This document shows positions 13,006 to 49,777 of a stretch of DNA of 64,000 nucleotides, piece after piece. The DNA lies in NCBI GenBank assembly GCA_964199315.1, contig OZ116698.1:5146001-5210000 (forward strand), in the 5' to 3' direction. Numbering within the stretch: the stretch's first letter is position 1; every line of letters begins with the position of its first letter. Under the pieces are notes generated by a model. That model made no database searches, was not told the DNA's origin, and was given only the letters and a program-made list of their open reading frames with translations. Position numbers and translations under genes: made by a program. The stretch comes from Orbicella franksi (lineage: Eukaryota).

Positions 13006-13135
13006 GGTGGGGCGGGGTTTGACTCCCTGGCGTAGAGTGCGAGCCGGCCTCGTATGAGGGTGCTCCCACTCCTTGGCGGTACTTTTTCATCTATGCCTCT
13101 ATGGTCGGTGGACATTGCACTGCGTCCATCGTACC
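13006..13135 (+). ncRNA. Structured 3'-UTR module of element B (T-arm fold plus AUUGCAC hairpin)
   Basis: P1 13006-12/13064-70; CGGGG-TTTGACT-CCCTG 13013-13029; hairpin 13103-13135 with loop ATTGCACTGC. Confidence 0.7.
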
Positions 13136-13153
13136 GCCTCAAATACAAAAAAA

Positions 13154-13171
13154 ACCTTACCTGACACGGGA
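13154..13171 (+). repeat. U1-derived target-site duplication after the A-tail of B
   Basis: AAAAAAAA-CCTTACCTGACACGGGA. Confidence 0.85.
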
Positions 13172-13440
13172 TTGTATGGCCGAAGACCCTATCATTTTGG
13201 TACCCCTTTTGTTGTCCTTCTTTAATTTTGGTAAGTTTGGCAGCTTTTTGCTGGTTTTTGTGGCTTTTCTAGCTATTTTCTGGGTGCCATCTTACCTTCG
13301 AGTCTTCTGGTTGATTTCTTGGTCACCCACCTAGCGTTTGGTTAAGCTGGGTCACCCATCCATTGGGGTCTTCGCCGATCTGGGCTTAACCTTTTTTCTT
13401 TTGCTTGGCTTTTTGCCTGGTGTTTATCATGCTGCCGCCG
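13172..13440 (+). mobile_element. 5'-UTR stub C of H-family U1-targeting element
   Basis: Matches 6661-6876 and 43385-43610; body missing, abuts the U2 promoter region. Confidence 0.8.
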
Positions 13441-13499
13441 TTTTTCCTTAAACACACGGTGGACATTGGTCGGTTCCAGGCCTCTCAGTGACAGCATAT

Positions 13500-44934: not shown

Positions 44935-45900
44935 GTTTGGCTTGTTCGAGGTCCTCCTCGAACTTGAGGCCTCCCTCCAGATCCAGATGGCTCTCTCCGC
45001 TGTTGTTGCTTCGTTGATGGTTTTTGCAGGTTTGGTTGGTTTTATTGTTGTCCAAATTCCCAATTGTGTTGGTCTTTGGTCCAAATTTCCAATTATTATC
45101 GATGTAAAGGTAGTAATTGATATTAATAATATATATTGCTTAGTTGTTTTCACTAAACTCCGTAGTATACCAATTGTTCCATGTTCCAAATTATCACTTA
45201 CATTCTGGTGTTTCTGCCACTGCTTGTTTAGCTTGTTTGAGGTCCTCAAGCTTGATGTCTTCCTTCAAAATGTGATGGCTTTCTCCGCTTTTGTTACTTT
45301 GTTGATGGTTTTTGCTGTTTTTGTTGTCCAAATTTCCAATTGTGTTGTCCTTTTGTCCAAATTTCCAATTATTATCTATGTGAAAGTAATTATTGATATT
45401 GATAATATATATTGCTTAGTTGTTTTAACTAAACTCCGTAGTGTACCAATTGTTCCATGTTCCAAATTATCACTTACCTTCTGGTGTTTCTGCTGCTGCC
45501 TGTTTAGCTTGTTCGAGGTCCTCCTCAAACTTGATGTCTTCCTTCAAAATGTGAAGGCTTTTTCCGCTTTTGCTGCTTGTTGATGGATTTTGCTGGTTTG
45601 GTTGGTTCTATTGTTGTCCAAATTCCCAATTGCGTAGTTCTTTGCTCCAAATTTCCAATTATTATTTCTAGTGTATACCTCAACCTATTTTATAACTTAA
45701 GTATCGTAATTGTAGTGAAAGTAGAAGTAGATATCAATAACATATATTGCTTAGTTAATCTAACTAAACCCTGTAGTGCACCAATTGTTATCCTTGTATT
45801 GTCTCTGGTTCCAAATTCCAAATTGTTTGTGGTGTCTATGGGTCCAAATTGTGTCTCAATTTACTTGTTGTGCCAAATTGCAATTGTTGTTTGCTGTTCT
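44935..45900. repeat. Three ~280-290 bp degenerate tandem units inserted between ORF1 and ORF2 of H
   Basis: CTTGTT(C/T)GAGGTCCTC recurs at 44941, 45232, 45508. Confidence 0.8.
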
Positions 45901-48900
45901 CCAGCTTCTCTCCTACCATGGCCTTGTCTGTCCTCTCTCTTAATTGCAATGGGATTAGAGACCAGTCTAAAAGGACCGGCCTTGTTCAGTGGTTGCACTC
46001 CTTGCCTCTTACTGTTGATGTGGTCTGTCTGCAGGAGACTCACTGTGTCTCTTTGGCAGAGTGTATCTCGTGGTTTTCCTCTTCTGGTTTTTTGTCTTGT
46101 GTTTCTCCTGGTTCTAATCACTTCCGTGGCTGTGTCATCCTATATCTCCCCCGTTGTCCCTTGTGGACTCATGGTCTGATGCAGATGGCCGCCTTCTGCA
46201 ATGTGAGTTTTCTTTCTATGGCAAGTCGTTTCGTGTTTGTCATCTCTATGCGCCTAATCAAAACCCTGATCATGACCAGTTCCTTGAGAATGTTTCTGAC
46301 GGGATCGATCCTTCTGTCCCCACCCTTCTTGTGGGTGACTTTAATACCGTTTTTGATCAGTTAAAGGATCGTCGTGGCTCTGATCCACTTTATTCCAGCC
46401 GTGAGAGCTCTGTTCGCTTGTCTGCCCTGTTTGACACTTGCTGTGTCGTTGATATCTGGCGGCACTTTCACCCCGACTCTTCTGGCTTTACTTGGACCAA
46501 GCAGGATGGCTCTATTGCCTCCCAAATTGACCTCTGCGGTGTACCCTATGCGTGGGTGCCCTCTGTTTCCTCCTGTGACATTGTTTCCTGTCCTTTTTCT
46601 GACCATTGTGCTCTTCTTTTGTCGTTGTCTGTTCCAGATGTTGTTCTCCCTGGCCCTGGATTGTGGAAATTAAATACCTCTATTCTATCTATGGAGCATT
46701 GTGATCTTATTTCTATTGCCTGGAGTAAATGGCGCTCCTCAGTCTCTCGTTTCCCTTCTCTTGCCAAGTGGTGGGAGGGAGGCAAGAGTCTCATTAAAGG
46801 TCTTACGATCAAGTACTGTTGTCAGAGATCAAAAGCTCATTCTAGCAGTAGAGATCTCGTCCGCTTGATTGATCATTTGAAGATGAAAATTGATGGTGGC
46901 TCTTCCTCTTGTGTTGGCCCGTATCATTCAGCCCTTGCAGAATTGGCCAAATTGGATCTTGAGGCTGCTAGAGGGGCCCAGGTCTGTTCTAGGGCCCGCT
47001 GGGTTTAAGGTGAGACTTCCTCTGCCTATTTCTTTAGGCTTGAAAAGAAGTGCGGGGCCGATCGCCGGATTTCGGCAATCAAGTTAGATGATGGTACCAT
47101 TGTCTCTTCCCCCGCTGAGTTATGTGCAGCTTTTGGTGCTTTTTATACTTCTTTATTTTCTGCCAACTCCACTGATCCTGTTATTCGTGCTTCTCCCCTT
47201 GAGAATGTCTCTTCCTCCCTGCCTCCTGACATGGCTGCCCTCTGTGAAGGACACCTTACTGTCCGGAATGTCTTACTGCCCTTCAGGGTATGGCCAGGTG
47301 TAAGGCTCCTGGCTTTGATGGCCTTCCCATCGAGTTTTATCTGAAATTCTGGTCTGTCCTTGGTCCTGATTTGGTCAATGTCCTTAACTTGTGTTTTGAC
47401 ACTGGATGTGTCTCCTTGTCTCAGCGTCGTGGCGTCATTTCTGTTTTTGAAGAAGGGTGATCGTTTGGACCCTAAGAATTGGCGTCTGATCTCTCTTCTT
47501 AATGTGGATTATAAATTAGCTGTGCGTGTCATTGCTGGTCGCCTTTTGAACGTCATCCATTTGGTTGTTGATAAAGACCAGACTTGCAAGGTCCCTGGCC
47601 AGTTTATTGGCGAAAATGTGGCTTTCCTCCGTGATGTTCTCTACTGCTCTACCTCCTTTGATGTGCCTGTCGCTATTCTTTCGCTAGATCAAGAAAAGGC
47701 TTTTCACAGGGTGGACTGGGATTTCATGCGGTCCACTCTATCTACTATGGGTTTTGGTCCTTCTTTCGTCTCATGGGTCAACCTTTTCTACAATTGTGTT
47801 CAAAGTGCTGTTAATGTCAATGGTTATCTGTCACCCTTCTTTAATCTATCTCGTGGTGTGCGTCAAGGCTGTCCTCTCTCCCCTTTGCTGTATGTGCTTG
47901 TTTCTGAAGTTCTCGCTGTAAATATCCGTTGTAACCCCCGCATTTCTGGTCCTACCCTTCCTGGGTCATCACCTTTGTCTCCCATTTCCCAATACGCCGA
48001 TGATACCTCTCTCGTCTTGTCATCTGACAACTCCATCAAAGCTACCTTTGACACCTACAATTTGTATCAGAAAGCCTCTGGTTAAAAATTAAATTGTGGC
48101 AAGTCCAAGGGTCTTTGGCTTGGTAGCTGGCGTGGCCGTTTGGATCCTCCCGTTGACCTTGATTGGTCCTCGTCTAAACTGAAGGTCCTAGGTGTGTTCA
48201 TTGGTATTGAGGACCTGGTGTAAGACAATTGGTGGCCTCGTATTCATGCTGTAGACAATGTTCTCTCTTCTTGGCGTTCTCATTCCTTGTCCCTTCGTGG
48301 GAAGGCTTTTGTAATCAACGCGCTTGCCTTGTCTTGTATTTGGTATGTTGGTTCCCTTGTTTTCATGCCGCCTCGTGTCATGCATGAGCTTTGTACCTTG
48401 GTATTCAACTTCTTTTGGAGTGGCAAACGTGACCTTGTCTCTCGTGGTGTGGTTGTCCAGCCGCCCCTTTATGGCGGCTTTTGTGTTGTAGATGTTAAGT
48501 TGAAAGTCTGGTCGCTTTTGGCTCAATGGGTGAAGCGTTTTGCTCCCTCCCGTTCTGGTTGGGTTTCGTTTATGTCCTTTTGGTTTGATTTGTATTTCAG
48601 TGCCTCTTTCCTTGATGTGTTCTCCTCCCCATTTTCCTTTCAACCTGGTGATCTCCCTCCTTTCTACAAGTCTCTGGTTTTGGCTTGGCGTGAGCTTGGA
48701 GGTGCCTTTTCCACCTCCCGGTCTTCTTTGGTCTTTGGTTCTGCCGATCCTCATTTTTGTGTTCCTGTCTGTTCTATGTCTACAAAGTCCTGTTATCAGT
48801 TTTTGTTGTCCGATAGACTTGCTGACCCCCATTGTGTTGAAAAGTTTGCTCCCGTGTTCGGTTTGCTTTACTGGCCCTCTACGTGGCGTTCTTTGTCCTT

Positions 48901-49613
48901 TTTCGACCTGGATCACCAAGTGTTAGATCTCAATTGGAACATTGCCCACGGTGTCCTCTACACTGCTGACCGTCTTTCCTCTTTTGCCCTTCCTCTCCCT
49001 CTTCCGTGTTTCTGGGTGCTCCTGTTGAGTCTTTGTCTCACTTGTTTTACGCTTGTCCTTTGGCCCAAAGTGTTCTGTCCTGGCTTCAATCGTTGATGTT
49101 CTCCTTTAGTCTGATGTCCCCTGTTCTGCTTGTCCGTGATTCTCTCTTTGGCTGATGAGTTACGTGCTACCCCTCGCGTTTTTGATTACATTCTGAATGT
49201 GTGCAAATTCTTTATTTGCCGGTCTAGGAATGACTTCCGTTTTCGCAGTGTAAAGCCTGGCACTTTGCCTGTCATCGAGTGTATGAAGTTGGGTGTGAAG
49301 TTCAACCTTTCGTTGTTCTTTAAGCGTTTCAAGTCCTCTCGTCGCCGTCATTTTTTTCATCGTCAATGGGGTACTTGTGGTGTTATTGCTTCTGTTACTA
49401 CTGGTCAACTGTCACTCAATATCTAAGTTTTAGTTTATATTAGGTTGTTTGTTGTGTCCTCTTGAACTGCGTCTCCTTAGTTGGTGTACTGTTTGCAGGG
49501 TTGTGTCTGTTGTTTCGTTTCGTCCTGTTCTATCTGTCTTGTGTTTGTCCTTGGTGTTGTCCTGTTTGTTTTGTTTTGTGTGTCGGGGTTTTTGGGTTGG
49601 GAATTTTTCTAAT

Positions 49614-49777
49614 GAGGTAGGTGAGGTTCGATTCCTCGGCGAAGTTGGCGGGCTGGCTACTTTTGTAGGTGTCCCCTACCTTAGGTAGACCAATTGGCGT
49701 TGGACTAGCACTGTATCCTTGTTATGGATGAGACTTGCAGTGGGCAGGCATTGCACTCCTCGCAAGGGAGCCTGGCC
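49614..49777 (+). ncRNA. Structured 3'-UTR module of element H
   Basis: GAGGTAGG/CCTACCTT stem; TGAGG-TTCGATT-CCTCG 49622-49638; CAGGC-ATTGCAC-TCCT..GGGA-GCCTG 49745-49774. Confidence 0.75.

Follow-up and report, generated by a model that had tools for sequence, protein, structure and literature searches.

A predicted four-way RNA junction with a T-arm-type hairpin in the 3' untranslated regions of Tx1-clade retrotransposons from the coral Orbicella franksi

Long interspersed nuclear elements (LINEs) of the Tx1 clade, which occupy a small nuclear RNA (snRNA) gene array in the coral Orbicella franksi, carry near the end of their 3' untranslated regions (UTRs) a fold that has no entry in Rfam and represents a new family of structured RNAs. 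Three copies of it (copies 1, 2 and 3) lie in the 64,000-nucleotide stretch analysed here, hereafter the window (NCBI GenBank assembly GCA_964199315.1, contig OZ116698.1, positions 5,146,001 to 5,210,000, numbered below from its first letter). An initial annotation, made from the letters of the window, had proposed a conserved multibranch RNA with a hairpin of the tRNA T-arm type, and covariation in a larger alignment of 75 distinct sequences bears out that the structure is real and under selection. No description of the fold, or of any Tx1 3' UTR structure, turned up when the full text of published papers was searched. We lean towards reading the fold as a module by which the element's own reverse transcriptase recognizes its RNA.

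Architecture and covariation of the fold

The fold is 53-68 nt long and is predicted to be a perfect four-way junction, in which four helices abut with zero unpaired nucleotides at the junction. P1 comprises 4-8 bp, the two junction-proximal pairs being almost always G-C. It is followed by a T-arm of 5 bp with a G-C closing pair and the loop UUCGAYU, by a mini-arm of 2 bp (G-Y/R-Y) with a 7-nt loop G-A-N-N-U-U-G (consensus GAAGUUG), and by P3 of 4 bp, which bears the loop YGG(N)U in a short class and an extra 4-bp stem-loop (P3b) between YGG and GU in a long class. The three T-arms, the flanking P1, the GCG after the T-arm and RGGTGY(C/T) before the P1 3' strand (P1') were found at all three sites with the sequences that the initial annotation had given, and two of its assignments had to be revised. 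The GCG had been suggested to pair with TGY; in the 75 relatives its G and C pair locally with RY 10 nt downstream. A conserved unpaired GG had been placed within RGGTGYC; this block is the end of P3b, followed by GU and the P3 3' strand, and the real unpaired GG is that of YGG on the 5' side of the P3 loop, which is present in 73-74 of the 75 sequences and in every diverged family.

The T-loop motif (UUCRANN on a G-C-closed 5-bp stem) occurs in 74 of the 75 distinct sequences, most of which were pattern-selected as described below. Among independently found families the T-loop consensus is kept in eight of ten, the exceptions being L012 (AUCGUCC) and L135 (CUCGAAA), and even in these otherwise altered loops the U-C is retained. 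The T-loop, through this U-C, may contact the GG of P3 in the manner of a tRNA elbow and compact the module; the candidate partners are invariant, so that no covariation can be read between them.

All three window copies lie on the + strand. Copy 1 spans 13006-13072 (covariance model score 76.3 bits, E 6e-14) and is composed of P1 (13006-13012/13066-13072, with two mismatches relative to the family consensus), the T-arm (13013-13029), the mini-arm (13030-13040) and P3 (13041-13065), the last including P3a (13041-44/13062-65), CGG (13045-47) and P3b (13048-51/13056-59). Copy 2, a member of the short-P3 class, spans 43255-43309 (40.9 bits, E 2e-06), with P1 at 43255-43261/43303-43309, the T-arm at 43262-43278, the mini-arm at 43279-43290 and P3 at 43291-43302, where the GAC/GUC stem holds the loop GUGGGU. 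Copy 3 spans 49615-49681 (85.7 bits, E 7e-16), with P1 at 49615-49621/49675-49681 and a possible eighth pair 49614/49682, the T-arm at 49622-49638, the mini-arm at 49639-49649 (pairs 49639:49649 and 49640:49648) and P3 at 49650-49674, with UGG at 49654-56. The T-stems of copies 1, 2 and 3 are CGGGG/CCCTG, CTGGG/CCCGG and TGAGG/CCTCG, respectively.

Several searches singled out these positions. A G-C-closed 5-bp stem bearing the loop TTYRAYN occurs at exactly three sites on both strands of the window (128 kb), which are the sites claimed in the initial annotation, and Markov shuffles expect 0.34. The covariance model, run on the window with filters off, returned the same three sites only, the next match scoring 9.4 bits. 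When the three UTRs were aligned with MAFFT, the fold and an AUUGCAC box were the only two conserved islands. In single-sequence minimum free energy predictions all helices were obtained for copy 3, P1 plus the T-arm and a third hairpin for copy 2, and an alternative fold for copy 1; the z-scores for copies 2 and 3 were modest (-1.8 and -2.0, respectively).

Because three sequences cannot prove a structure, relatives were gathered by two routes. In the first, the C-terminal open reading frame (ORF) of copy 1 (354 aa) was compared with 1.8 billion representative proteins, which gave 978 matches, and the contigs of ten were examined; contigs of relatives are denoted here by L numbers. In the second, one scan of JGI metagenome contigs was performed with a pattern that took in the T-loop and the 3' strand of the T-stem, together with part of the linker and the first positions of P3, and 120 stretches were obtained. 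About 80 of the 120 are true copies, mostly from coral-associated sets, with complementary P1 strands of many different sequences. The remaining 40 or so are bacterial coding sequence without stem or P1; they were removed by T-stem pairing and local G+C content and played no part in the model searches that followed. A covariance model trained on 27 gap-free long-P3 sequences recovered all protein-derived relatives and added three copies in the metagenome loci that the pattern scan had missed (L026:2064, L036:1391 and L114:642).

Across all model matches (91, 75 of them distinct), 95.2% of the cells are paired and 16 of the 20 pairs have changed on both sides. For the 75-sequence set, 0 of 500 shuffles reached the observed value on every measure, and slid controls gave 54-65% paired cells and a covariation score of 0.08-0.10 against 0.44 observed. 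The cleanest test is offered by the pattern-free set, comprising the window and the protein-derived loci (11 sequences, about 9 families), with 96.4% of cells paired, 15 of 20 pairs double-changed and 0 of 500 shuffles as good, on an alignment that is still model-fitted and leans towards structure. Several compensated pairs were found in each of the four helices, and P1, the 5' strand of the T-stem and P3 beyond its start lie outside the constraint of the metagenome pattern. RNAalifold, applied to the pattern-free alignment, independently gave P1, the T-arm and P3 together with a 2-bp helix in the linker, which is the mini-arm; its second pair is C-G in 55, U-A in 17 and U-G in 2 of the 75 relatives and unpaired in none.

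Position in the element, domain 2 and distribution

In all families the fold is located 48-126 nt upstream of the poly(A). Where a contig extends into ORF2, about 100-340 nt usually separate the end of the closest ORF2 C-terminal match from the fold downstream. Two domains can be distinguished in the terminal 150-190 nt of the LINE RNA, the four-way junction (domain 1) and, following it in most copies, domain 2. Both are still present in 5'-truncated copies as short as about 230 nt. Domain 2 is bounded by a long-range helix, P4, which in most copies begins 2-3 nt after P1', encloses one or two (A/C)UUGCAC hairpins resembling stem-loop II of U1, and ends just before (A)AAUAC-poly(A). Examples of P4 are GGCGGUAC/GUACCGCC, AGGUAGAC/GUCUACCU, GGUGGAC/GUCCACC and GGCGAA/UUCGCC. 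At least 7 contiguous P4 pairs were found in 67% of copies against 13% of shuffles, and P4 covaries among relatives. In the window, on the + strand, domain 2 of copy 1 (13075-13138) has P4 at 13075-13082/13131-13138 and the AUUGCAC hairpin at 13109-13128; domain 2 of copy 3 (49683-49785) has P4 at 49683-49690/49778-49785 and hairpins that include AUUGCAC at 49750-49756. Copy 2 has an AUUGCAC hairpin at 43326-43341 with a GGC/GCC stem and a 10-nt loop, and no P4 was seen in this copy. The fold occurs without any AUUGCAC box in L003/L004, the L018 group and the L027 group.

A possible switch, in which the 5' strand of P1 would pair with the 3'-terminal strand, extends to 9-11 bp in some families; its overall mean of 6.4, against 5.4 for shuffles, is not above shuffles. 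An alternative pairing of this type can be drawn in the window between 49614-49622 and 49778-49788, the 5' strands of P1 and P4 being alike. Elsewhere in the UTRs, a motif of about 30-35 nt (GGTCKCCTTNRTTGGTGTACTG-like, inside a hairpin) was observed right after the ORF2 stop (window 49471-49501, 12905-12935, 5890-5930 and 6029-6069; also L008:2790-3080 and L010:2990-3140). It is common to U1- and U2-linked families, and some UTRs contain it more than once.

Among the protein-derived relatives, L001 (58% identity to the copy 1 query), L002 (47%; the element sits in a real U1 gene) and L008 (54%) have the fold downstream of the stop, and in L010 a neighbouring copy, which lies within a U1 leader, has it in its tail. 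L003/L004 (38% identity), for which no U1 target was identified, contain the fold and lack the AUUGCAC box. In L012/L013 (30% identity, in U1) the arm is kept with the loop AUCGUCC (L012:5789-5805, identical in L013). L012 has an intact ORF2 of 1181 aa, and its loop has exchanged the bases at positions 1 and 5 (U..A to A..U) with U-C-G and the P3 GG retained. L135 (38% identity in the ORF2 C terminus) shows the same four-way junction, with the loop CUCGAAA on a C-G-closed stem, plus a UUGCAC hairpin; this stretch (L135:4732-4870) ends inside U2 snRNA at ...GATCAAGTGTAGTATCTG, so that the element targets U2. The fold tracks the protein lineage rather than the target, since it is found in U1 families, in L003/L004 and in the U2-targeting L135; the families that carry it range over ORF2 identities of 30-60% and include two different targets, U1 and U2.

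The model also confirmed the fold in a GC-richer group drawn from other metagenomes (L027, L030, L060, L068, L080, L085, L122 and L126; Ga03158xx/Ga03159xx). In this group P1 is CAGGGGG/CCUCCUG and about 60 nt lie between the fold and a poly(A); the AUUGCAC box is lacking, and no Tx1 ORF could be detected in the vicinity. The L120 group was considered as a tail-only short interspersed nuclear element (SINE) sharing the fold and was rejected, the alignment showing L120 to be a 5'-truncated copy and the others to reach further upstream. Among the contigs of relatives examined, L005-7, L009, L011 and L134 lack the fold, as do the U2-linked elements of the window (ending at 6245 and 56477). The family of L005, L006 and L007 (full-length Tx1, 40% identity, Tara Oceans contigs) has no fold; in its place the 3' UTR (L005:5513-6230, same in L006 and L007) carries about six repeats of about 100 bp, each with an AUUGCAC-like CTTCTTCAYTGAYTGCACTSGCA box.

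Possible transcripts are represented by contigs from two metatranscriptome libraries, which cover the UTR of copy 3 at low depth. One of them matches 49535-49769 perfectly; another is a variant copy in which U49622 of the T-stem is replaced by C, turning a U-G pair into C-G. No read ends were clustered at the fold in these low-depth contigs, which are too thin to test processing, and two raw poly(A) data sets labelled as the same species yielded zero reads.

Genomic setting and host elements

The window is a coral snRNA/5S gene array packed with non-LTR retrotransposons. Of 4227 Rfam families, only U1, U2 and 5S gave matches at or above the gathering threshold, namely a complete U1 snRNA gene (49797-49960), U2 snRNA (6245-6427 and 56477-56666) and 5S on the minus strand (50316-50427). 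The retrotransposon ORFs of the window encode an APE endonuclease, a reverse transcriptase and a zf-RVT domain (Pfam Exo_endo_phos, RVT_1 and zf-RVT). Upstream of the fold, on the + strand, copy 1 has ORF1 and ORF2 remnants (8073-12825), including the C-terminal ORF 11761-12825 with zf-RVT; copy 2 has a 5'-truncated ORF2 remnant with the reverse transcriptase domain (40114-43020); and copy 3 (43874-49423) has ORF1 (43874-45580) and a frame-broken ORF2 with APE and reverse transcriptase domains. The three copies belong to three different families; their ORF2 segments are about 50-60% identical, and their UTRs gave no BLASTN match to each other.

After the poly(A) of all three window copies and of many relatives stands CT(T/C)ACCTG, which is U1 from nt 4. 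On the + strand, the poly(A) of copy 1 (13147-13154) is followed by U1 from nt 4 onward (CTTACCTG) at 13156, that of copy 2 (43358-43368) by CTTACCTG from 43369, which is the U1-derived 5' leader of copy 3, and that of copy 3 (49793-49799) adjoins the complete U1 snRNA gene (49797-49960). The stretches of about 240 bp lying 3' of copy 1 (13156-13393) and copy 2 (43368-43609) correspond to the 5' leader of the next element, and an uninterrupted version of this leader was found at 6645-6879 behind a U1-type start. Because these leader stretches open with U1 nt 1-19, the copies are taken to have been inserted head to tail. At sites other than U1, too, CT very often comes first behind the poly(A) (for example CTTTCACG, CTCTAGTT, CTGTACGG and CTGGTCAT), which points either to a preference for targets of the form ...A|CT... 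or to C(T) being part of the element's 3' end.

The host elements are site-specific LINEs of the Tx1 clade, as assigned from domain order and target behaviour rather than from a tree. They resemble Keno and other target-specific Tx1 elements in an ORF2 with APE, reverse transcriptase and zf-RVT domains, in the poly(A) and in insertion into multicopy small-RNA genes (Kojima and Fujiwara 2004; PMC4494074). The relatives share the ORF1 zf-CCHC with Keno-type Tx1, and L135 is inserted in U2, as is Keno. The published Tx1 target lists, as far as their accessible portions go, name U2, U5, 5S, satellites, microsatellites and transposons, and U1 is not among these.

Other repeats were also observed in the window. 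An insertion at 36326-40080 has direct repeats of 608 bp at its two ends (36326-36933 and 39473-40080; 99.3% identity) and contains ORFs with a weak RVT_1 match. It splits a Tx1 copy at 33621-36358, which lies shortly before copy 2. Tandem or satellite-like repeats lie between the retrotransposon copies at 14068-14507, 23537-23863 and 15353-16272, with periods of roughly 35-40 bp and 205 bp, and two of these three blocks are related to each other.

Comparison with known RNAs and possible function

With the R2 3' UTR core, the stem-loop of eel and zebrafish L2, and SART1/R1, the fold has in common that it is a structured element in the last 200 nt or so of a LINE RNA; as in other site-specific or 'stringent' LINEs, the structure is conserved beyond the sequence and kept in 5'-truncated copies. 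It differs from R2, whose structure consists of two stems and a single-stranded junction and whose endonuclease is of the restriction-like type, in being a perfect four-way junction with a T-arm-type hairpin and in belonging to a Tx1/L1-like clade with an APE endonuclease. By analogy it would belong with the LINE 3' UTR recognition structures, albeit with an unusual tRNA-like design.

The likeness to the tRNA T-arm and elbow lies in the 5-bp stem with a G-C-closed 7-nt UUCRAYN loop, in a stem stacked directly on the T-arm, and in a four-arm junction with a GG arm across from the T-arm. The arm order of tRNA (acceptor, D, anticodon, T) is however reversed, as stem, T, small arm and GG arm. Unlike tRNA, mascRNA and the plant-virus tRNA-like structures, the fold has a third arm of 2 bp, no acceptor end or CCA, and a position internal to an mRNA-like transcript. 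The view of the initial annotation that it is not a tRNA gene stands: ARAGORN predicted 0 genes on both strands of the window, the arms follow the order P1, T, mini and P3, and the fold was detected neither by ARAGORN nor by the Rfam tRNA, tmRNA and mascRNA models. Searching the UTRs against Rfam at E<=10 gave no tRNA match; the best score on the fold was an alignment of the T-arm to the mascRNA model, which at 17.9 bits stays below the cutoff of 42.5. The acceptor-like pairing GCUUC/GAAGC that this alignment places around the T-arm of L001 is missing in other copies. An inserted tRNA-derived SINE, also considered in the initial annotation, was rejected because the fold always lies between the ORF2 stop and the poly(A), a position fixed in all families, and co-diverges with the LINE lineages; an A box is lacking, and T-rich sequence lies on either side. 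With U1 snRNA the fold shares the perfect four-helix junction, and the element also copies the loop AUUGCAC of U1 stem-loop II. There is no correspondence in sequence or arm length, the AUUGCAC hairpin resides in a separate domain, and the Rfam U1 model matches the true gene only.

On balance we think that the fold probably acts in cis as a module by which the reverse transcriptase or ribonucleoprotein (RNP) of the element recognizes its own RNA, the binding partner and the part played in reverse transcription being assigned by analogy. This reading is favoured because the structure is compact, selected and terminal, is kept in truncated copies and tracks the protein lineage across U1 and U2 targets, and because it is also found in families without the AUUGCAC box. 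A LINE recognition element is expected to be structured, conserved, 3'-terminal and retained in truncated copies, and the fold has all four properties. In R2, target-primed reverse transcription starts only on RNA with a small structured core of the element's own 3' UTR (PMC10499050). By analogy, the ORF2 protein (ORF2p), or an ORF1/ORF2 particle, would bind domain 1 and thereby select its own RNA, and binding would bring the 3' end of the RNA to the nicked U1 gene in a position suited to target-primed reverse transcription; docking of the T-loop U-C on the P3 GG might give the module its compact shape. Among the options raised in the initial annotation, we infer that recognition by ORF2p is the best supported; no sign of a ribozyme or of nuclease processing was found, the latter in RNA data too thin to test it. 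Several observations weigh against recognition by ORF2p. The near-perfect match to the tRNA T-loop exceeds what a generic protein-binding hairpin needs and hints at a host factor. Because the T-loop and a portion of the linker served to select the roughly 80 pattern-derived sequences, conservation there is partly built in. The RNA evidence comes from low-depth metatranscriptome contigs and may include DNA carry-over. Finally, the fold must be dispensable for some Tx1 reverse transcriptases, since it is absent from related full-length Tx1 families (L005-7, L009, L134 and the U2-linked elements of the window).

The main rival explanation, which we regard as unlikely, is one in which the T-arm stacked on P1 and the GG loop imitate the acceptor/T-arm minihelix and elbow and engage a host reader of tRNA shape, such as a TRUB1/Pus4-type pseudouridine synthase, the m5U54 or m1A58 methyltransferases, La, exportin-t, RNase P/Z or the CCA-adding enzyme; the RNP could gain RNA stability, transport or localisation from this. 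The loop and closing pair do match G53-U54-U55-C56-R57-A58-N-N-C61 in eight of the ten independently found families, the GG lies in the arm opposite the T-arm as in the D-arm of tRNA, and the elements imitate a second host RNA, U1 stem-loop II. GUUCGAYUC also fits the stem-loop code of TRUB1 targets, GUUCNANNC. The reversed arm order, however, gives the P1/T-arm stack the opposite strand connectivity, an equivalent of the anticodon arm is missing along with any tRNA or mascRNA model match, and cleavage by RNase P/Z would detach the ORF from the tail and defeat retrotransposition. Moreover, L012 and L135 alter U54 and/or A58, and L135 also the closing pair, which a strict T-loop reader should not tolerate. 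A related view, to which we give rather little credence, sees a reversed-order cloverleaf, in which a tRNA elbow with mirror connectivity and the AUUGCAC hairpin together borrow host small-RNA handling and steer the RNP to U1/U2 arrays; the borrowed handling might be modification, transport or localisation to Cajal bodies and snRNA genes, with the AUUGCAC hairpin as a binder of U1A/SNF.

A purely architectural role, with the junction shielding the 3' region from exonucleases or keeping the AUUGCAC domain in a form that would recruit U1A/SNF, would agree with the 2-3 nt that separate the fold from domain 2 and with G+C-rich helices in an otherwise U-rich UTR. We consider it distinctly improbable, as the AUUGCAC box is lacking in some carriers of the fold (L003/L004 and the L018 and L027 groups) and a plain stabiliser needs no invariant loop sequence. 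It is very improbable that the signal acts as DNA, with GGTTCGAYTCC serving as a Pol III B box or an extra-TFIIIC site in the integrated copy. Most copies do match the B box exactly, but no A box lies upstream, the flanking T-runs would terminate Pol III, and such a site cannot account for the way in which P1, the mini-arm, P3 and the outer pairs of the T-stem covary. Other LINEs carry ribozymes (HDV-like and twister), and a T-arm with an AGUUGG-like loop could derive from a tRNA; a self-cleaving ribozyme, or a functionless relic of an inserted tRNA or tRNA-SINE, is nonetheless scarcely credible here. No Rfam ribozyme or tRNA model matches, the read ends, weak data as they are, show no clustering, and cleavage inside the retrotransposed unit would be self-defeating, while a neutral relic is ruled out by compensatory evolution across families with 30-60% protein identity.

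To our knowledge, RNA selection by APE-type L1/Tx1 LINEs is poorly understood, and defined RNA handles exist for few LINEs (R2 and some of the L2 type). A compact, covarying motif common to many families that target snRNA genes provides a concrete RNA for work on this mechanism. The family can be added to Rfam from the present alignment, and the fold could serve as a minimal 'tag' in site-specific insertion tools, as the R2 tag did. The T-loop and GG are a candidate case of natural tRNA-elbow mimicry with reversed arm order; if the reversed cloverleaf were true, these would be the first LINEs to combine tRNA and snRNA mimicry, with a natural tRNA elbow made from a permuted topology.

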